64,000 nucleotides of DNA from positions 186,001 through 250,000 of the forward strand of contig JAHLTZ010000016.1 of assembly GCA_025786725.1 (NCBI GenBank), written 5' to 3'. The translations under genes and the position numbers were made by a program. Source of the stretch: Syncephalis fuscata S228 (lineage: Eukaryota; Fungi; Zoopagomycota). Below are positions 17,273-62,224 of this stretch, one piece after another; the first letter of the stretch is position 1; every line of letters begins with the position of its first letter. The notes under the pieces were generated by a model. The model was not told the origin of the DNA. It was given only the letters and a program-made list of their open reading frames with translations, and searched no databases.

Positions 17273-17707
17273 AGTAATATTAACCATCGTAATAAGAATA
17301 ATAATTGATAATAGTAGTTGATAATGGGTTATTTTATAAGTTTAATATATTAAGTATTAGAATTAAAATTAAAATCCTATATACATATACCATCCATCCA
17401 TTTATATTATTTTCATTGTATACTTATATGAGTTGAAATTTGCTGTTAATAAAGTTAAAGACAAATTGATAACAGTTTTGAATAGAGTATAGACATTATG
17501 TAATAGAACAATGTCAGATCAGCAGTATTAACAGTATAATGCGTATAGTGGGATGAATGGAATGAGTAGTGTTGAAGTATATAATAAACAGAATGTGTCT
17601 AGTATATTATAGAATAATATATAGTAGTATGGAATATAATGGAAATAAATGGTGGATATATGCATGCTGGATAACAAATCTATGATAATGAGTATTTTAG
17701 ACTTTGT

Positions 17708-17925
17708 GTCATTTGCCACCCATCATCATGTTCAATAGATTGGGTGTTATTAAAATAGCCATTTTATTCCAAGCTATTCTAAATGGCTAATAAATTCAAT
17801 TAAATTGTATAATAATGTTAATAAGCATACAATATTTTAATAAAAGTAATATAATTATGTTATGAATAATAATACAACTTGATTGGAACAAATTTTACTT
17901 GGGGAACTCAAAATGTAAGAGTCAA
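17708..17925 (+). repeat. Dispersed AT-rich repeat, copy A
   Basis: Similar to 57744-58145 (catcatcatgtt..agattgg..ttattaaaatagc..ttcaattaaa.tgtataataatgtta; gattggaac.aatttt). Confidence 0.75.
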
Positions 17926-26066: not shown

Positions 26067-27247
26067 TTAAGCAGTTTCGCTGTAGATCAGCTTGTTTGGC
26101 GTGCCCTTGGTTGGATTGGAAATAACATTAGGGGTAGCGTTGCTGACAAGAGCACCGTAAAGGGCGTTGACGGTGGAGTATTTGCCGCTGGCTAGGTAAA
26201 GTGCGGCAACACCAGCAACGTGAGGAGAGGCCATAGAAGTGCCAGAGATGGTGTTTTTGGCACCATCATTACCCTTCCACAATGAGGTAATATCGACACC
26301 TGGAGCGTAGACCTTGACACAGTTTCCAAAGTTTGAGAAGTAGGCTTGCTTGTCAGTCTTATCGCTGGCAGCAACGGCGAATGCACTGGAGGCGCCAGAT
26401 GGAGAGCCTGCACAGGCATCGCCAGCATTGTTACCGGCAGCAACGATAAAGGCAATTCCAGCCTCAACAGCGGCATTTACGGCATCATCAATTACCTTGG
26501 ACTTGCCGCCGCCAAGCGACATGTTTACAACGGATTTGCCAGGACGAGCATTTTGAGCAACGTATTGAATACCGGCAAGTACGCCGGAAATGGTACCAGA
26601 ACCGCGGCCGTTAAGTACTTTGACACCGTAGATCTTGGCCTTTTTGGCAACACCATAGGTGGCCGAACCAACAGTGCCGGCAACATGAGTGCCGTGACCG
26701 TTCAAATCGGCATTAGCTTCGCCGGTGACGAAGCTCTTGATCAATTTGGCGCGGCCTTCAAAATCGGCATGGGATTCTTGGACACCGGTATCAACGATCC
26801 AGATGTCGACACCTTCACCAGCAGTGTCTGGATAGACAAATGGCTTGGTGAGATCGAGGACACGTTCAGAAACACGCGTCAGACCCCAGCTGGGTGGAGA
26901 GGCTTGGTCGGCTGCGATTTGCATAATGCCATCTTCTTCAATGTATTCGACACGTGAGTCCTTCTGTAGACTTTTAACTTCGTTTTCAGAAAGCTGGGTG
27001 GCGAAACCTTGGAATGATTTGGAGTTGTAGGTGTACTTGTATTTCTTTCCAACAAAGTTGTTGGTCTGGGCGATGAATCGTTTAGCATCATTTCCAGCGC
27101 GAAGCTTGACAATGTAGGTTCCTTTGACCTCAGACAAGAGAGAGTTGTCGCTGGCCTGGAATGCGTTATCTTCAAGAATGGCACCGTTAATGGGCGTTAC
27201 AGCCAAAAGAATGGCAGAGACAAGGATAGAGCAGATACAAATTTCAT
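26067..27247 (-). CDS. Secreted subtilisin (S8, proteinase K-like) with I9 propeptide; intronless; -1 break in the signal peptide
   Basis: TYIVKL propeptide; catalytic VDTG, NGHGTHVAG and SGTSMASPHVAG motifs. Confidence 0.95.
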
Positions 27248-28217
27248 GATAAAAATGGTGTTAACTTAACAGTGGTGATAAACGAGTAAAAAATAGTTTG
27301 CCGTAAAGATTGTTCGTAAAATGAAGCGTAAAAGAACGTAAGCGTAAGTCAAGAATGGGTTGTTTGTTTGGTATAATTTGTGGCAGTTAGGCCAACAAAT
27401 ACGTGCTTTAAATAAGAAATTTGATTATCAATACAACTTGCTACTCTAATCAATTCTTTACAATGTTAACATTCAAAGCTTCGAAGTGTTGATACACATG
27501 TGCCACATGTACTACACTCCCATATTTTCTTATTGAGCACCGGCTAAATTATTGATAGACAAAAAGCCGCTATTCACGCCAGGCGGCGTGAAACCAAGCT
27601 GCAAAAGCAGTACACCAAGTAAATTTGGCCTATTATGTATTATTGCCAGAATCATTATCACACTAATGCACGTGCAATGTAATAATCAGGTGATGAAACG
27701 TGACCTATTGTTTTTACCCATTGTTGTCGACCGTCTAACAACAAGAAATTAGGAGATACCAACTCATTTAGGCAAAAAAATGAATCCGTTTTTATTGCCA
27801 TATATAATTAAAGTATACAGACACTCGTCAGCCATTGGTGTATTCAAATACCAGCCAGCACTAAAATAAAATTTATTATTTCATTTATCAACATATAAGT
27901 GCTTGAACGTATTTTGTGTTAATCATTTGAATTATACAATCGCTACACTTAATTAATAGGCAATTTCGTCATAGCAACATCTCATATTTTATCACGCAAT
28001 TGTTCTCGCCTTTCGTGATGTCACAAATTTGGATCACGCGGATATTGTTGTAACAAAGACGGCTTTTTATGGTCACGACATGCATCATGCAGACTGCGTC
28101 AGCTGCCAATCTCATTTATTAACAAATTACTATTCATAATAAAGCATTCATAGTTCATTAACTCCTATTTGTATTTGACTTTGTATATTTGATTTTATTC
28201 TACTTGCGCTAACGATA

Positions 28218-29903
28218 ATGAAATTCAACGCTATTTTGATATGCCATTTAATGAGATTATGGCTCTGTGTAACTATTGCGGGAACACTTGGAATTGCGAG
28301 TGGACTGGCGTTCGTTGGACGTCATCAAGTTGAATTGGGCAATGCTAAGGCCCAAAGCAATTCCGCTCCATTAGTAGGAAAGCCTATTCCCAACTACTAT
28401 ATCGTCCATTTGAAACCAGGTGCACGAGTAGATGAATGTTAGTACATACGTGATATATAGGACTTTTTGCTAATTTGCTATTTAGTCGATGATACTTTGG
28501 AAGAGGCAATGGTACAGGCTAATACCGAAAAAAGTACTCGAAACGAACCATCAAACTCGCTGCTACATCGTTACAGTCAACCAAATGGGTTTCAAGGTTA
28601 TGCGGGCCGTTTCAATTCTGCCATGATACGTCGACTTCAGGACTCTGGCCAGATTGAAAGTATTGAGCAGGACACCATCATACATATGGCTGATCAGCAA
28701 ATGGCACCATTAGCCAATTGGGGTCTCGCACGAATATCGCATCACGCCAAATGGCAGTCAAATGAGTCATTTAACTATCCAGCCTCTGCTGGTAATGATG
28801 TAGATGTGTGGGTACTGGACACAGGTGTTAATGAGCAGTTGCCCGACTTTGAGGGAAGAGCTCATATGAAAGTTAGCTTTATACCGGGCGAACCGGCCAA
28901 TGACACCAATGGACATGGTAAGTGTTGTAAATTAATTAGCTTTATTTTGCGTATTTAATGGTATATAGGTACACATGTTGCCGGTATTGTAGCAAGTAAG
29001 ACGTATGGTGTTGCTAAAAGGGCCAATGTTTATGGCATTAAGGTTTTGAATAGTTATGGTGACGGCCGTATGTCTTATCTTCTGTCAGGGATAGAATATG
29101 CCACAAAACACGCGCGTCGCAATCACACCATCATCAATCTTTCGCTAAGCGGAGGAAAGTCCGAGGCATTAGACAAAACAGTGAAGGCAGCCTACGATGC
29201 CGGTATACCAGTCATTGTCGCGGCGGGCAATGACGAAGTTGATGCATGTGACGGATCACCGTCTGGCACACCAACTGCCTTTACCGTTGGCGCGGCAGAT
29301 AACACGGACTTGATAGCCGAGTTTTCCAATTATGGCGCTTGCGTCCGGTTATTTGCACCTGGCGTCAATATCGCCTCTTGGTGGATTGGAACAACGCCCA
29401 CTACACGTGTCATTAGTGGTACGTCTATGGCTGCGCCCCATGTAGCTGGCGCAGCGGCAATTCTTTTAGGAATAGCCAAAACTAGTAACCCGGAGATAAT
29501 ATACCAGCAATTGCTGGACTGGGCAACCGTAGATACAGTCCAAAGGCAGCCGGATGACAGCACATCTCCAAGCCGACTGCTCTACATACCGTCCGTCATT
29601 AGCAATATTTCTGTCGTCGTACCCGACACCCCGACAATAGCCAGCACTTTTTCAATTCCAAACGTAACAATTACCACCTCTAGCTCACTACCAACCACCA
29701 CAAATACAGCCAATTTATCGGCAACAGTGTTAAGCACAACAGCAAGCATTAGATCATCATCTACATCGATTCCAGAGCCCGCTCCTTCCAACATTGTGAA
29801 TAATGCAAGCAGTGCTTCTACCGCAGCGCTTCAAATCCAGCCAACATGTCATACGCTTTTGCCAAGTAGTTTATTATTAAGTTTATTTTTTGTATTAATT
29901 TAA
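28218..29903 (+). CDS. Subtilisin (S8) with S/T-rich stalk and hydrophobic C-terminus (putative GPI anchor); 2 introns
   Basis: YIVHL, LDTG, NGHG|THVAG, SGTSMAAPHVAG; tail ends LLLSLFFVLI. Confidence 0.92.
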
Positions 29904-42238: not shown

Positions 42239-42559
42239 ATCATTAATAGCTTGTTGTTCGTCGTCGCCTTTTTCTGTTCCCACCTAGCCTGATTATTACT
42301 ATTATTTCTCCTTGTATCCATGCGATTTATGTTTTTTTTAACTGCGTGATATGCATCCGCATTTCCAGGCTGCTTAGCCTTTTTTTGTTTTTTTACTATA
42401 TCTTTTCTACGGCCGTTTACTGCCCTCCTAGTATTATACGTACTAGTGCGTGCCTTGGCCACACCTTTCTTTTAGACACTCGTCTTTTATTTGGCTTTAT
42501 TTTTTTGTAGTTGTTTAGCCATTGGCATCAAGTTAATTACATTTCTGTTAGACGCACTT

Positions 42560-44605
42560 TTTTGCGCCAATGTTTCATTGAGAAATATGTTGGAATTAAC
42601 TTGAGCCATATTAATTGAATGGTGCTTATTAATGATGTTCATTTACTCCTAACGAGAATTTTAGCCCCATATAAACCACCCACCACTATACATAGTTTAG
42701 AATATTATATATAATTATAGATTCACTGCGCCTCTTGATTATTCATAGAATAAAACTAGCTAAGAAATATCCTACATTGTCCACTTTTTGTATCAATTAA
42801 AATTTTTGCTTTTTTCTTTCGTTTATAGCTCGCTCTTCTAATACAAGCCGTTTTAATGATGAAACAACAAAATTAAGAGAACTGATTCAATGCCATTTAA
42901 AATATTATTGTCAAGGTGCTGTCTATACTTCAATCCTGCTTAGATATTCCAATCAAATAGCAACATATGAAGTTACAAAAATCAAGGTAGCCTATTTAAT
43001 TAAACAGTATTAAAAACAACTTTGGCCAGCAATTTCGTAAATTACTAAATTTAATTTTGAATATTAAAAGTAGAAAGGCCAATTTGGAAGAGCAAATGAA
43101 ACGTCAAAAATATTCTGATAAAACAATAAAAGCAGCTTTATTTCAAAATATCATAAAACCTGCAGCCCATTTAAAGCAACAATTTGCTTTTGAAAAAAGT
43201 AAAAACAGCTCAGATTATCAACCAATATGCGACATGATTAAGCTAATCTTTGACTCATATCCACCAAATTACAAGTTTTTATCAAAATCCATATATTACA
43301 ACAGTAAACCTTGTTCTAAAAAACACACGAATGCATATCATTAAATAGCTAAATTGGTAAAAATATTTAAATTATTTACAATGCTTTTCTTTGCGCACAT
43401 TTTGGATTCCTGGCTACATGCAAATTGATACGTTTATTCTGTGTCGATGTATTTTAGGTGCAAATCCTGCTAATTTTTCAAAAATAGAAATGTCTGGAGC
43501 CAAGTTGTCGAACTCAAAAAAAAGCATTCAAATCTAGCAACAATCAACATGGCTCTTCAAGTCTTCAAGGATTAATTCAAACAGATTGTGCTGGTGTTTC
43601 TATATTGCTGCAGGACAAAAACACCATAGACAGATTCAAACCAGGCTATAATCCAAAAAGAAATTCAAAAAAGACAGATATGATATCAGTATATTAGTGA
43701 CATTAACAGAGATGATATAATATCAATTGCTGACAAGTGTGTATTAATTGGCCCTGAAAGAAGAGATTCAATGTATTGTGTGCATAAATCCAGCACCATT
43801 CAAGAGCCAAGAATCTACAGATATACTGCAAACCAAATATATTTTTGATATCAATGACAAGAAGTATTTCAAAATTAGATTGGAATTAAAATCAAAGTAT
43901 TCCGCTGTTTAAGAAAATAAAGATTTATTATTTCAATGTCGAACCGGATCTGTTAGTTTACTCAATTTTAAAATATATCTTGCCATTCGTGCCTTTGTCG
44001 GCCAGCATTTTGCACTATACTACATTTATTAAACAAATATAGGCTCTATCAAACAAAACTAGCTGTTTAGAAACCTAAAACTATCTTTGTACATTAAATA
44101 ATAGCACGCGAATTAAAAGCTTGTCAATAAGCTTAAATCCAAGTTTGGTAGTGATGCTACTTTAATATTTAGTGACCGGTCTACAAGTCATGTAATTTTC
44201 AAAAACCTATTCAAGGTGCTGGTTGAAGCGTGTGCTTCAAAGAATGGTTTTAACGTGCTTTAGTTGATGAGTATAACAGCTCTAAAACCTATCCCACTTG
44301 TCAAGCTCTAAGTTTAGAAACATCTAAAATAATTGATTATCCACGCCCGTATCAGCGTCACGATCATCCAAAAGTAAAGTGTCATGGGCTTTCAAGGTAC
44401 TGTAATTTATAGACTGAATACAAATGAATATTTTATTCTAACATCTAGATTGTTTGCAGATGCACAAACCAAAATTATAAGAAAGCGCATGAAACTTTTA
44501 CTGGTGCAAAATTGTGGCATTGTGATTTGGCTGCTGCTTTGAATTTCAAACATATTTTTGATAGTCTACGACTCAGTGGTACCATACCAGGCTGATTTTG
44601 GAGAA
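42560..44605 (+). mobile_element. Decayed Fanzor1 (TnpB-like RNA-guided nuclease) pseudogene or non-autonomous element; 5' boundary approximate
   Basis: Translation through stops and frameshifts gives WIPGYMQIDT, FQGLIQTDCAGVSILL, KCVLIGPERRDSMYCVH (RuvC-I), YRYTANQ, KLKSKFGSDATLIFSDRS, VDEYNSSKTYPTC, PRPYQR..CHGLSR|CTNQN and LWHCDLAAALNFKHI (RuvC-III). Confidence 0.85.
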
Positions 44606-44862
44606 GCTAATTCGCCTTGGAGTTTATCGACTTTTAAATTAAAATATAGGTAATTATAATGACCGCTTTTTAATGACAATTACTGATTTTTATTAATATT
44701 TATAAACATCTCAATCTTTTTCTTCATTTTATTTTACTTTTTACACATTTCAAGTAACCGTACTAGCATTGCCATATCTACTGATTGCATATATGTAATT
44801 TAAGTGGTCATCCTACCACCACTTTGCTACATCTTCACTCATTCTCAATCACATTTACTATC

Positions 44863-45288
44863 ATGGGCAACTGCTGCTCTTCAAACGATACTAGCAATTC
44901 CTATCCCTTAAAGAACATGGGAGGAGGGGAAAGAGCGACCGTGCAGGAGCAACCAATAAGAACAGCTGGCATGACAGCCAACACTGATGAGGCTCGTGCG
45001 AAGCGGTTAGCAGCCGCTGAAGAACGTCATCAAAAGGCAAGTACAACTCATCGCATCTATTAGCACAGCCTTAACAATTCAATGCTTGTAGGCTGGTCGA
45101 CGAGGCGTGCAGCAGGGCGGTGGACAGCTTGCGAAAAAGTTGCAAGACCAGCAAACATCGGCGGGGATTGGTCAAGGGGAGATTCCTGCCAACAACTTAG
45201 AGGTAAGTTACGGTTATTGTTGTTGTTAGTAACGTGTGGTATGCATAGCAAATAACTAACCTTACATTTGCAGTGGCGTGTCGACTAA
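44863..45288 (+). CDS. SVIP-like small acylated protein (3 exons)
   Basis: MGNCCS myristoyl/palmitoyl motif, RAKRLAAAEERHQK|AGRRGVQQGGG, C-terminal WRVD. Confidence 0.75.
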
Positions 45289-45387
45289 ATTGGTTATCAA
45301 TTGGTTATCAATTGGTTGTTTTCTAGTCTGCGATATATTAAATCTATTTTGTTAAATCAATAACGGATGTGTAATCATATTCAAAGT

Positions 45388-57439: not shown

Positions 57440-57743
57440 TTGGAAAGAAGGATCTACTCAACTTTGAGTCTCTAGCTTGAGCTGGGGACAAAAAAAGATC
57501 CATAACTCAATCTTGACAATAAATTGTCAATTGGTTTTGATACTGAGAATTGTTATTTATTGAAGCAGTGCTATATCAATTCCGATTAATTCAAGTGGAG
57601 ATGAGCCAGTCTACACTATTTTCAATATCGAAATAGATATTGAATAGTATTTCATGTTACAATAAAATATAATAAATAAATAAAGGTTAACTCATATTAT
57701 TATTGCTGTAAAGTATTCAAAGCATTATAATTTAATATTTAAC

Positions 57744-58145
57744 GTCATTTACTATTCATCATCATGTTGAGTAGATTGGATATTATTAAAATAGCTATTT
57801 AACCACAAACCATACTAAATGACTAATAGATTCAATTAAACTGTATAATAATGTTAAATGATACGCAATATTTTATATAATAATGTGCTTTATTTAACTC
57901 AATTAACAAGTACTAAAATTAAAAGTTTAAGATGAAATGGCACATAATATGTATATATTAGTGTAATAATACCAATATAATCAAATAGAACAATTAACTA
58001 AATAATTACTGATATCATTTATTTAAATCAAATTATTAATAACATTTATTAAAAAGCAATATAATTGTGATGTGCATAATAATGGCATGACTCCGATTGG
58101 AACGAATTTTGCTTTAAAGGCTCAAATAGAAAATGTAAAGTAGGA
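57744..58145 (+). repeat. Dispersed AT-rich repeat, copy B (with extra internal sequence)
   Basis: Similar to 17708-17925. Confidence 0.75.
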
Positions 58146-60831: not shown

Positions 60832-62224
60832 GATGAATGAGAGTGATGGTTGGTAAAGCCGTGGACTGTAGATGATGTGAATGAAAAGATAAGTGATAAA
60901 AGTTGTCATTAGCTTTGCTATGGCACCAATTTATAGCTGTAAATCTGACAGGCATATTCTGTATTCCGCTCTATAATGTCTACTTTTGGTATAGGATATT
61001 TGTGACGCATTGGATAGACCAGCGTAGTAAAGGGGCAAATAAAGCTGAAACCAGGATATACCATTAATGATCAAAGTTTATAATTAGCATGTCGGTACTT
61101 GAATATAGTTTCAGAGCAAGCTTTTGGTTTCAATTATTTCCCATAATAAAATAAACACGGGTAATAACAGAGATGGTGTTCTACTCCGCACTGGCTTTGA
61201 AAGCGTCAAGAAGCACTATATAAAACCAATAGATATAGCAAAATTGCTGCATTTACTTGAATACGTGTAAATGTATAATAAATAACTAATGTTATAATTA
61301 AATAATGTTTTTTATTAATTGTTGAGATATGTATTTGTATTGTTATATTATTGTGAAAATGTAAATGTTGCATAATGCAAGTAAACATTCAAACGATAAG
61401 AATGATAAAAGCAGTTTAACAAAAGCTTAAAGCAGTAATTGCAACTTAGCTATACTGTAAACGGTACGTGCTATATTTGGCAATTATAATTTAATTACCG
61501 TTAGATGTGGCGGAGTTGTAACTGGTGGTTATGAAGCGGCCATCTTTGTTACAACCATACCAGTATTCCGCAAGAGCGTCCGACAACCCAGTCCCGTGCT
61601 GGAATGCAAAAAGATAGCGATAAAGAGCACAGCAATTACAAAAGAAACGGCTATAGAAGTAATTTTGGACAGTAAATTTCTGTTTACGGCTAATAATTCA
61701 AAAAATATCTGAAATAGACAAGATAATGCCACATTCAACAGCAGACTCCAATAGGATGCCCAAACTATTTGCTAATTTTCCCTCAACCAACGAAATAACA
61801 GAAACAGATAATACAGCGCCTATTCTTTAGTAAAAAACCAGCCATAGACCTTCAACTCCATTAATAAATGTGCCAAACCAGTAGAAGGGTCAAAGTAAAC
61901 ATTTATGCAATAGAATGAAAAGGCTGCGCCCAACTAGCAATCAAGGCGCCATTCTGCCTAGTCCACGCAAAAGCGTAGTGGCCAAGTCCGGCTCGATAGG
62001 AAATAATGATTTTTAAACTAGAAGGTATTATCGTTATTTTCCAAAGATAAATATAATAAAGTGTCGACCATTAGTTTATAATAGATAAAAATATGACACA
62101 ATTAAAAAGCTGTTTATTTTTATAACATGTATTTGTAGTAAGTGCTTGTACGCCATGACATTTACATAATGTCATGCAAAAAACATTATAAAATAACAGG
62201 ATGTAAATAGATTATTTATTCTAT

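Follow-up and report, generated by a model that had tools for sequence, protein, structure and literature searches.

A decayed Fanzor1 of Syncephalis fuscata and the occurrence of its family's 3' ends beside paralogs of one subtilisin-like gene clade

Fanzor1 is common in early-diverging fungi, and omegaRNA-guided cutting of empty sites is established for the Fanzor family. The described proteins PpFz1 of Parasitella parasitica (PDB 9CF0) and SpuFz1 (PDB 8GKH) (PMC11423790, PMC10711439) have a fixed domain order with TDG, DPG and G(D/N)WS motifs, an alternative glutamate before a C4 zinc finger and a terminal RD, measure approximately 600–770 aa and have no transposase within the element, all of which recurs in the family described here. 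The alternative RuvC-II glutamate just 5' of the zinc finger is a Fanzor1 trait (PMC10711439, PMC13565253). Some Fanzor1 elements are 5'-variable, namely CRe-1/2/3 and MCi-2 (Bao and Jurka 2013, PMC3627910), and MuDR ends are known from some Fanzor1 elements of Mucorales (PMC3627910). We here describe a dead Fanzor1 in Syncephalis fuscata, a mycoparasite of the Zoopagales, located in a 64,000-nt stretch of DNA (the window, whose positions are used throughout), together with its relatives elsewhere in the genome.

A preliminary description made from the letters of the window had placed a hidden, colinear Fanzor1 protein of roughly 600 aa at 42,560–44,605 on the plus strand. The frameshift-aware comparison with Fanzor1 that it proposed gave a significant colinear alignment: window 42,300–44,700 against a profile of 21 relatives scored 464 bits over profile positions 36–650, spanning approximately 600 codons, against 15–23 bits for reversed, complemented and shuffled nulls. 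An hmmsearch returned six colinear segments (E 1e-4 to 1e-43) and no further match anywhere in the window. Joined exons, with X at breaks, served for local scoring only. A 175-aa piece that remains open in a sister copy matches both PpFz1 (E 5.6e-14) and SpuFz1 (E 1e-9) in the PDB, and the frameshift-aware alignment counts 7 frameshifts and 7–8 stops in the window copy, in line with the dead Fanzor1 that had been proposed. Judged by its sequence, the stretch from approximately 42,780 to 44,595 (+) is thus a dead Fanzor1. Taken singly, its short pieces score weakly (E 0.011), and Pfam gave no match above cut-off on the window pieces (Cas12f1-like_TNB at E 0.075 on 44,266–44,292), as would be expected of a chance match or an unrelated RuvC-like gene; the colinear 464-bit alignment, approximately 30 sister copies and the PDB Fanzor1 matches make that reading extremely improbable. 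The proposed start at 42,560 was not supported, given that tblastn of relatives shows firm homology only from approximately 42,777–42,810, with a weak extension back to 42,675. The sequence from 42,560 to 42,780 is probably the 3' UTR of the upstream zinc-finger gene, because an RNA contig 3' of that gene reaches 42,782. Neither the left end of the element nor some 60–75 codons of the N-terminus can be recognised, if they are present at all, and the Fanzor1 body is near-silent in RNA contigs, which carry neither strand nor level.

The remnant of exon 1 (42,777–44,396, +), delimited by tblastn, profile alignment and hmmsearch, covers REC/WED, RuvC-I, RuvC-II and the start of the zinc finger, and the motifs that had been quoted are present where described and in the expected order. 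The WED-domain TDG motif reads TDC at 43,581–43,589 (+) in the profile alignment and TDG in a sister copy. At RuvC-I (KCVLIGPERRD, 43,735–43,767, +) Gly stands in place of the catalytic Asp (IGPERRD); sister copies read IDPGKRD and LDTGRRD, and the Asp is kept in all seven other S. fuscata copies that reach the motif. The degenerate G(D/N)WS strand TLIFSDRS (44,159–44,182, +), in which GDW/GNW has become SDR, is followed by the intact alternative RuvC-II glutamate (DE, 44,266–44,271) and the first zinc knuckle, whose first Cys has become Tyr (together 44,266–44,292, +). CHGLSR and then CTNQN follow as described, but the break between them, taken for decay, is instead a 63-nt GT-AG intron within the zinc finger (44,397–44,459, +), located at the same codon in intact relatives, namely one from soil metagenomes and the copies of S. 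plumigaleata. Exon 2 (44,460–44,595, +) has lost the last zinc-finger Cys and keeps the RuvC-III Asp in WHCD, with LWHCDLAAALNF present from 44,512 as previously stated; the terminal RD has decayed to CD here and in most copies, and RD codons remain in two. In total, the window copy has lost two of the four zinc-finger Cys, all four of which are present in the majority of sister copies, and it retains the RuvC-II Glu and RuvC-III Asp while lacking an open frame with a D-E-D triad. Forms that keep the Asp, TDG or four Cys occur among sister copies, unlike in the window copy.

The element extends approximately 240 nt beyond the reading frame, to approximately 44,835, as a conserved non-coding 3' tail common to sister copies (44,596–44,835, +). 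We presume that this tail is a putative omegaRNA scaffold and the right end of the element; its folding z-scores of 0 to -2.2 are not significant. A TIR search of the window's left side against the tail did no better than shuffles, and an imperfect 15-bp TIR discernible by eye is hence not claimed. Short TIRs with CAG/CTG ends and a TA duplication were likewise not found for the window's family. As the preliminary description had it, no transposase is near: a transposase-like frame was not seen among the window's long ORFs.

Directly downstream lies a small three-exon gene (44,863–45,289, +) with its ATG 28 nt past the end of tail homology, which we provisionally call SVIP-like after its motif; Pfam gave no match on its exon 1. 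One RNA contig carries both the spliced SVIP-like mRNA and the last approximately 95 nt of the Fanzor tail. Since this contig (contigs show neither strand nor transcript start) begins inside the tail, the dead element may provide the 5' UTR or promoter of the gene (window 44,741–44,863). No significant match to the tail as a captured promoter was found upstream of the S. plumigaleata SVIP gene. Relative to that species, the synteny near the homeobox and SVIP-like genes is rearranged. A stand-alone piece with similarity to the tail and the left-end region of the element lies at 61,214–61,349 (-; nhmmer E 7e-5), within a tandem secreted-protein region. Two subtilisin-like genes of ordinary type, with prodomains of the I9 type, occupy 26,067–29,903 of the window and have no relation to the clade discussed below. 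Nothing in the material resembled viral or human sequence.

The closest solved structure to the window Fanzor1 is PpFz1. The label 'Mucorales-type' used in the preliminary description therefore stands in the sense of PpFz1-like only, and the host belongs to the Zoopagales. Unlike PpFz1, the S. fuscata family lacks the approximately 100-aa FRI insertion, seen as an alignment gap, and unlike both PpFz1 and SpuFz1 the window copy is dead, is hosted by the Zoopagales and belongs to a lineage separate from the intact S. plumigaleata element. The 175-aa sister piece has 357 protein matches among 50%-identity representatives. Its nearest long relative comes from soil metagenomes (47% identity to the piece) and itself matches PpFz1 at E 9e-127; relatives were found in Halteromyces, Bifiguratus, Coemansia, Rhizopus, Parasitella and S. 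plumigaleata. A single-sequence structure prediction of one relative reached a pLDDT of 35 and was set aside. S. plumigaleata has intact Fanzor1 frames of 768 and 771 aa after splicing, in 4.2-kb elements with 37-bp TIRs and a TA duplication; it is this relative, and not the S. fuscata family, that shows the Tc1/mariner-type combination of TIR and TA duplication. The two elements (L053 2320–6511; L054 2302–6534) are 93% identical and have approximately 1.7 kb 5' of the frame without a called gene. The expectation that intact relatives exist elsewhere in the lineage was thus borne out in S. plumigaleata, whose copies group apart from the window's lineage in a tree in which the C316 row is disregarded; in the S. 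fuscata genome, protein searches with the top candidates scored found no intact copy, which makes this a lower bound.

DNA searches of the S. fuscata genome gave 32 matches at 69–88% identity, representing approximately 24 loci after merging three near-identical contig pairs; several further contig pairs resemble haplotigs. Only three loci are near full length (the window, C201 and C223), the others retain only the 3' part, and all family matches are broken in protein searches. The 3' end of the C223 copy is cut off by an 800-bp foldback element (L003 2827–3622), unlike the repeat that flanks subtilisin-like loci (below), and a weak, inverted tail-like piece lies to the left of the C201 copy. 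Divergence among copies is even across codon positions (0.18/0.14/0.14; fourfold sites 0.11), and C>T and G>A changes are abundant. The tree of 3' parts is star-like, with free copies interspersed among those linked to a host gene (below). The even codon-position divergence and the star-like tree indicate one burst followed by neutral decay, and the window copy is almost certainly a non-functional Fanzor1 from one old burst of a non-autonomous element. A second, more distant Fanzor1 lineage is represented by a decayed, 96% identical pair at C316:40.5–42.6 kb and C24:576.7–578.6 kb, with a MULE domain approximately 5 kb from the C316 copy. MULE transposase genes or domains are present elsewhere in the genome, and a search of the genome for DDE_3 (PF13358) found none.

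The dead gene alone is ordinary; what is unusual is the behaviour of the family. Sixteen of the approximately 24 Fanzor loci, two of them (C257 and C290) assigned by coordinates only, abut members of one subtilisin-like (S8) clade, against approximately 0.12 expected by chance. The window copy is not linked to any subtilisin-like gene. The clade, which matches Pfam S8 at E 9e-19, is expanded in S. fuscata to approximately 28 loci, approximately 12 of them without an arm match, and the catalytic His has become Arg in the six members aligned over the HGT motif, which is retained in a divergent S. fuscata S8 copy and in a S. pseudoplumigaleata relative. Going by these residues, the linked genes probably encode inactive secreted proteases. 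Their second-position divergence of 0.20 is near the fourfold value of 0.26, which suggests that the clade is weakly constrained or diversifying; many of these His-less copies are frameshifted (the clade includes L029 5031–7013). The two sister species have one distant S8 match each, and no Fanzor was found beside their S8 or SVIP loci. A second, foldback-type repeat family of approximately 0.8–1.1 kb, possibly Mutator-like, flanks many His-less S8 loci, with sites at window 17,571–17,764 and 57,724–57,805 and on C317, C268, C35, C168, C135 and C2.

The linked copies are 3'-only 'arms' that meet the S8 gene at a small number of shared junctions. Downstream arms have the same orientation as the S8 gene, with junctions at window-equivalent 43,565, 43,784 or 44,184, and upstream arms are inverted, with a junction at window-equivalent approximately 44,000 that is common to six loci. 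Two of the 16 loci have arms on both sides and 14 have one. Within the double-armed loci the arms are 703 bp and 99.7% identical (C109/C13) or 669 bp and 98.2% identical (C112), whereas between loci they are approximately 85% identical; in both of these loci the right arm is cut short on its outer side. No locus keeps both outer ends, and target-site duplications were not identified. C109:670–4917 (L015+L010) and C13 (L008+L016) are 99.5% identical with a 2.8-kb middle inverted between the 703-bp arms, which is either a flip-flop inversion or an assembly effect. With CRe-1/2/3 and MCi-2 the family shares the excess of 3' ends, the 5' truncation and the foreign sequence 5' of the Fanzor 3' part. 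Unlike in those elements, the upstream sequence always comes from one host gene family, which predates the arms, and some loci bear inverted double arms; neither Helitron2 ends nor target-site duplications were demonstrated.

Between independent loci, arm divergence (p 0.15) is lower than S8 fourfold divergence (p 0.26) and S8 upstream divergence (p 0.34). S8 divergence exceeds arm divergence in 62 of 62 pairs, which are non-independent, and the gap holds within each base class. Purifying selection as the reason why arms look young is ruled out by the codon-position divergence. Five loci with the same junction have approximately 72% identity across the gene, 71% over the first 60 nt past the stop codon and then 87–90%, giving a sharp boundary approximately 60 nt 3' of the S8 stop. 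Beyond the tail, the sequence resumes as the 3' flank of arm-less paralogs in C317a at +147, C317b at +211 and C109-left at +16, with scores of 193, 114 and 60, respectively, against shuffle maxima of approximately 42; re-entry points thus differ (+16, +25, +147, +211). Left-arm outer flanks did not match upstream S8 sequence. Flank resumption, the boundary and the divergence gap together indicate that the arm is an insertion in the flank of the S8 family and younger than the paralogs. A scenario in which Fanzor carried and founded the S8 expansion is disfavoured, since the S8 genes are approximately twice as diverged as the arms and approximately 12 clade loci are armless. Tracts of 99–100% identity join otherwise distinct S8 paralogs (C2/C235 and C35/C318), so ectopic conversion is active.

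Given arms at approximately 15% divergence beside genes at 26% or 34%, and a sharp boundary between them, we favour as the most probable explanation that arms were copied onto older, already diverged S8 paralogs by homology-driven repair. In an active ancestor, transcription through the 3' end would have supplied an omegaRNA for the nuclease to bind, and the loaded nuclease would have cut empty sites matching the flank, thereby favouring retention of the element. One or a few insertions would then have hit the conserved flank of one S8 family member, from where ectopic gene conversion or break repair could have moved the arm onto other, older paralogs, while the same copying homogenised paired inverted arms; all copies would since have decayed neutrally. 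Against copying onto paralogs, faster mutation or later conversion from paralogs of greater age may have inflated S8 divergence, left arms in six loci have a junction in common yet carry outer flanks unlike upstream S8 sequence, and the foldback repeat near many S8 loci could be the real vehicle that moved them.

RNA-guided homing is a specific form of such homology-driven copying, and we regard it as possible but unlikely. An insertion approximately 150 nt past an S8 stop, in a conserved multicopy flank, would gain a guide matching the empty paralogs, tail-keeping arms would supply omegaRNA, full copies such as the window's ancestor would supply nuclease in trans, and repair of the cut would copy the arm. 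In agreement with this, the post-tail sequence of C317a equals the arm-less S8 flank from +147, the insertion point has a homogenised tract of approximately 90 nt on its left, the 3' tail region survives in nearly every arm and the arms radiated in a single burst. TnpB homing is documented in bacteria (PMC13565253), and the equivalent insertion site, the short homogenised flank and the empty-site sequence directly after the element end are features shared with TnpB/OMEGA homing and homing endonuclease genes (PMC13565253), although here the putative targets lie in a eukaryote and are ectopic paralogs instead of alleles or sister chromatids. However, nuclease activity and omegaRNA are predictions only (tail folding being non-significant), the points of re-entry differ, homing leaves the left arms unexplained, and conversion needs no nuclease, because recent conversion tracts postdate the death of the nuclease. 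Pack-MULE-like cargo, in which inverted Fanzor 3' ends acted as long TIRs around a captured S8 gene, the cassette was mobilised by a transposase and cores were later swapped by conversion, is quite unlikely. [quoted passage not shown] Unlike in Pack-MULEs, however, the repeats are Fanzor coding DNA, 14 of 16 linked loci are one-armed, both double loci have a right arm truncated at its outer end, no 9-bp or other target-site duplication was found, and S8 cores and promoters are approximately twice as diverged as the arms.

In our literature searches we found no paper linking Fanzor arms with older paralogs of one host gene family. Here, a Fanzor 3' end lies at equivalent positions beside many older paralogs while armless ones persist, and the coexistence of filled and empty paralogs offers natural substrates on which paralog homing could be tested. 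For biochemistry, the intact element of S. plumigaleata, whose TIRs and TA duplication are defined, is a ready candidate. An expansion of subtilases has been reported in Zoopagomycota (PMC6784888). It is a tentative idea, and on balance an unlikely one, that transposase-free Fanzor1 homing ran across this pseudo-protease family, its breaks and repeats promoting the shuffling of candidate effectors. The arm pattern gives a hint that elements of this kind are able to spread from one gene paralog to another, and it suggests that their repeats may help a lineage-specific pseudo-subtilisin family to diversify in a mycoparasite.
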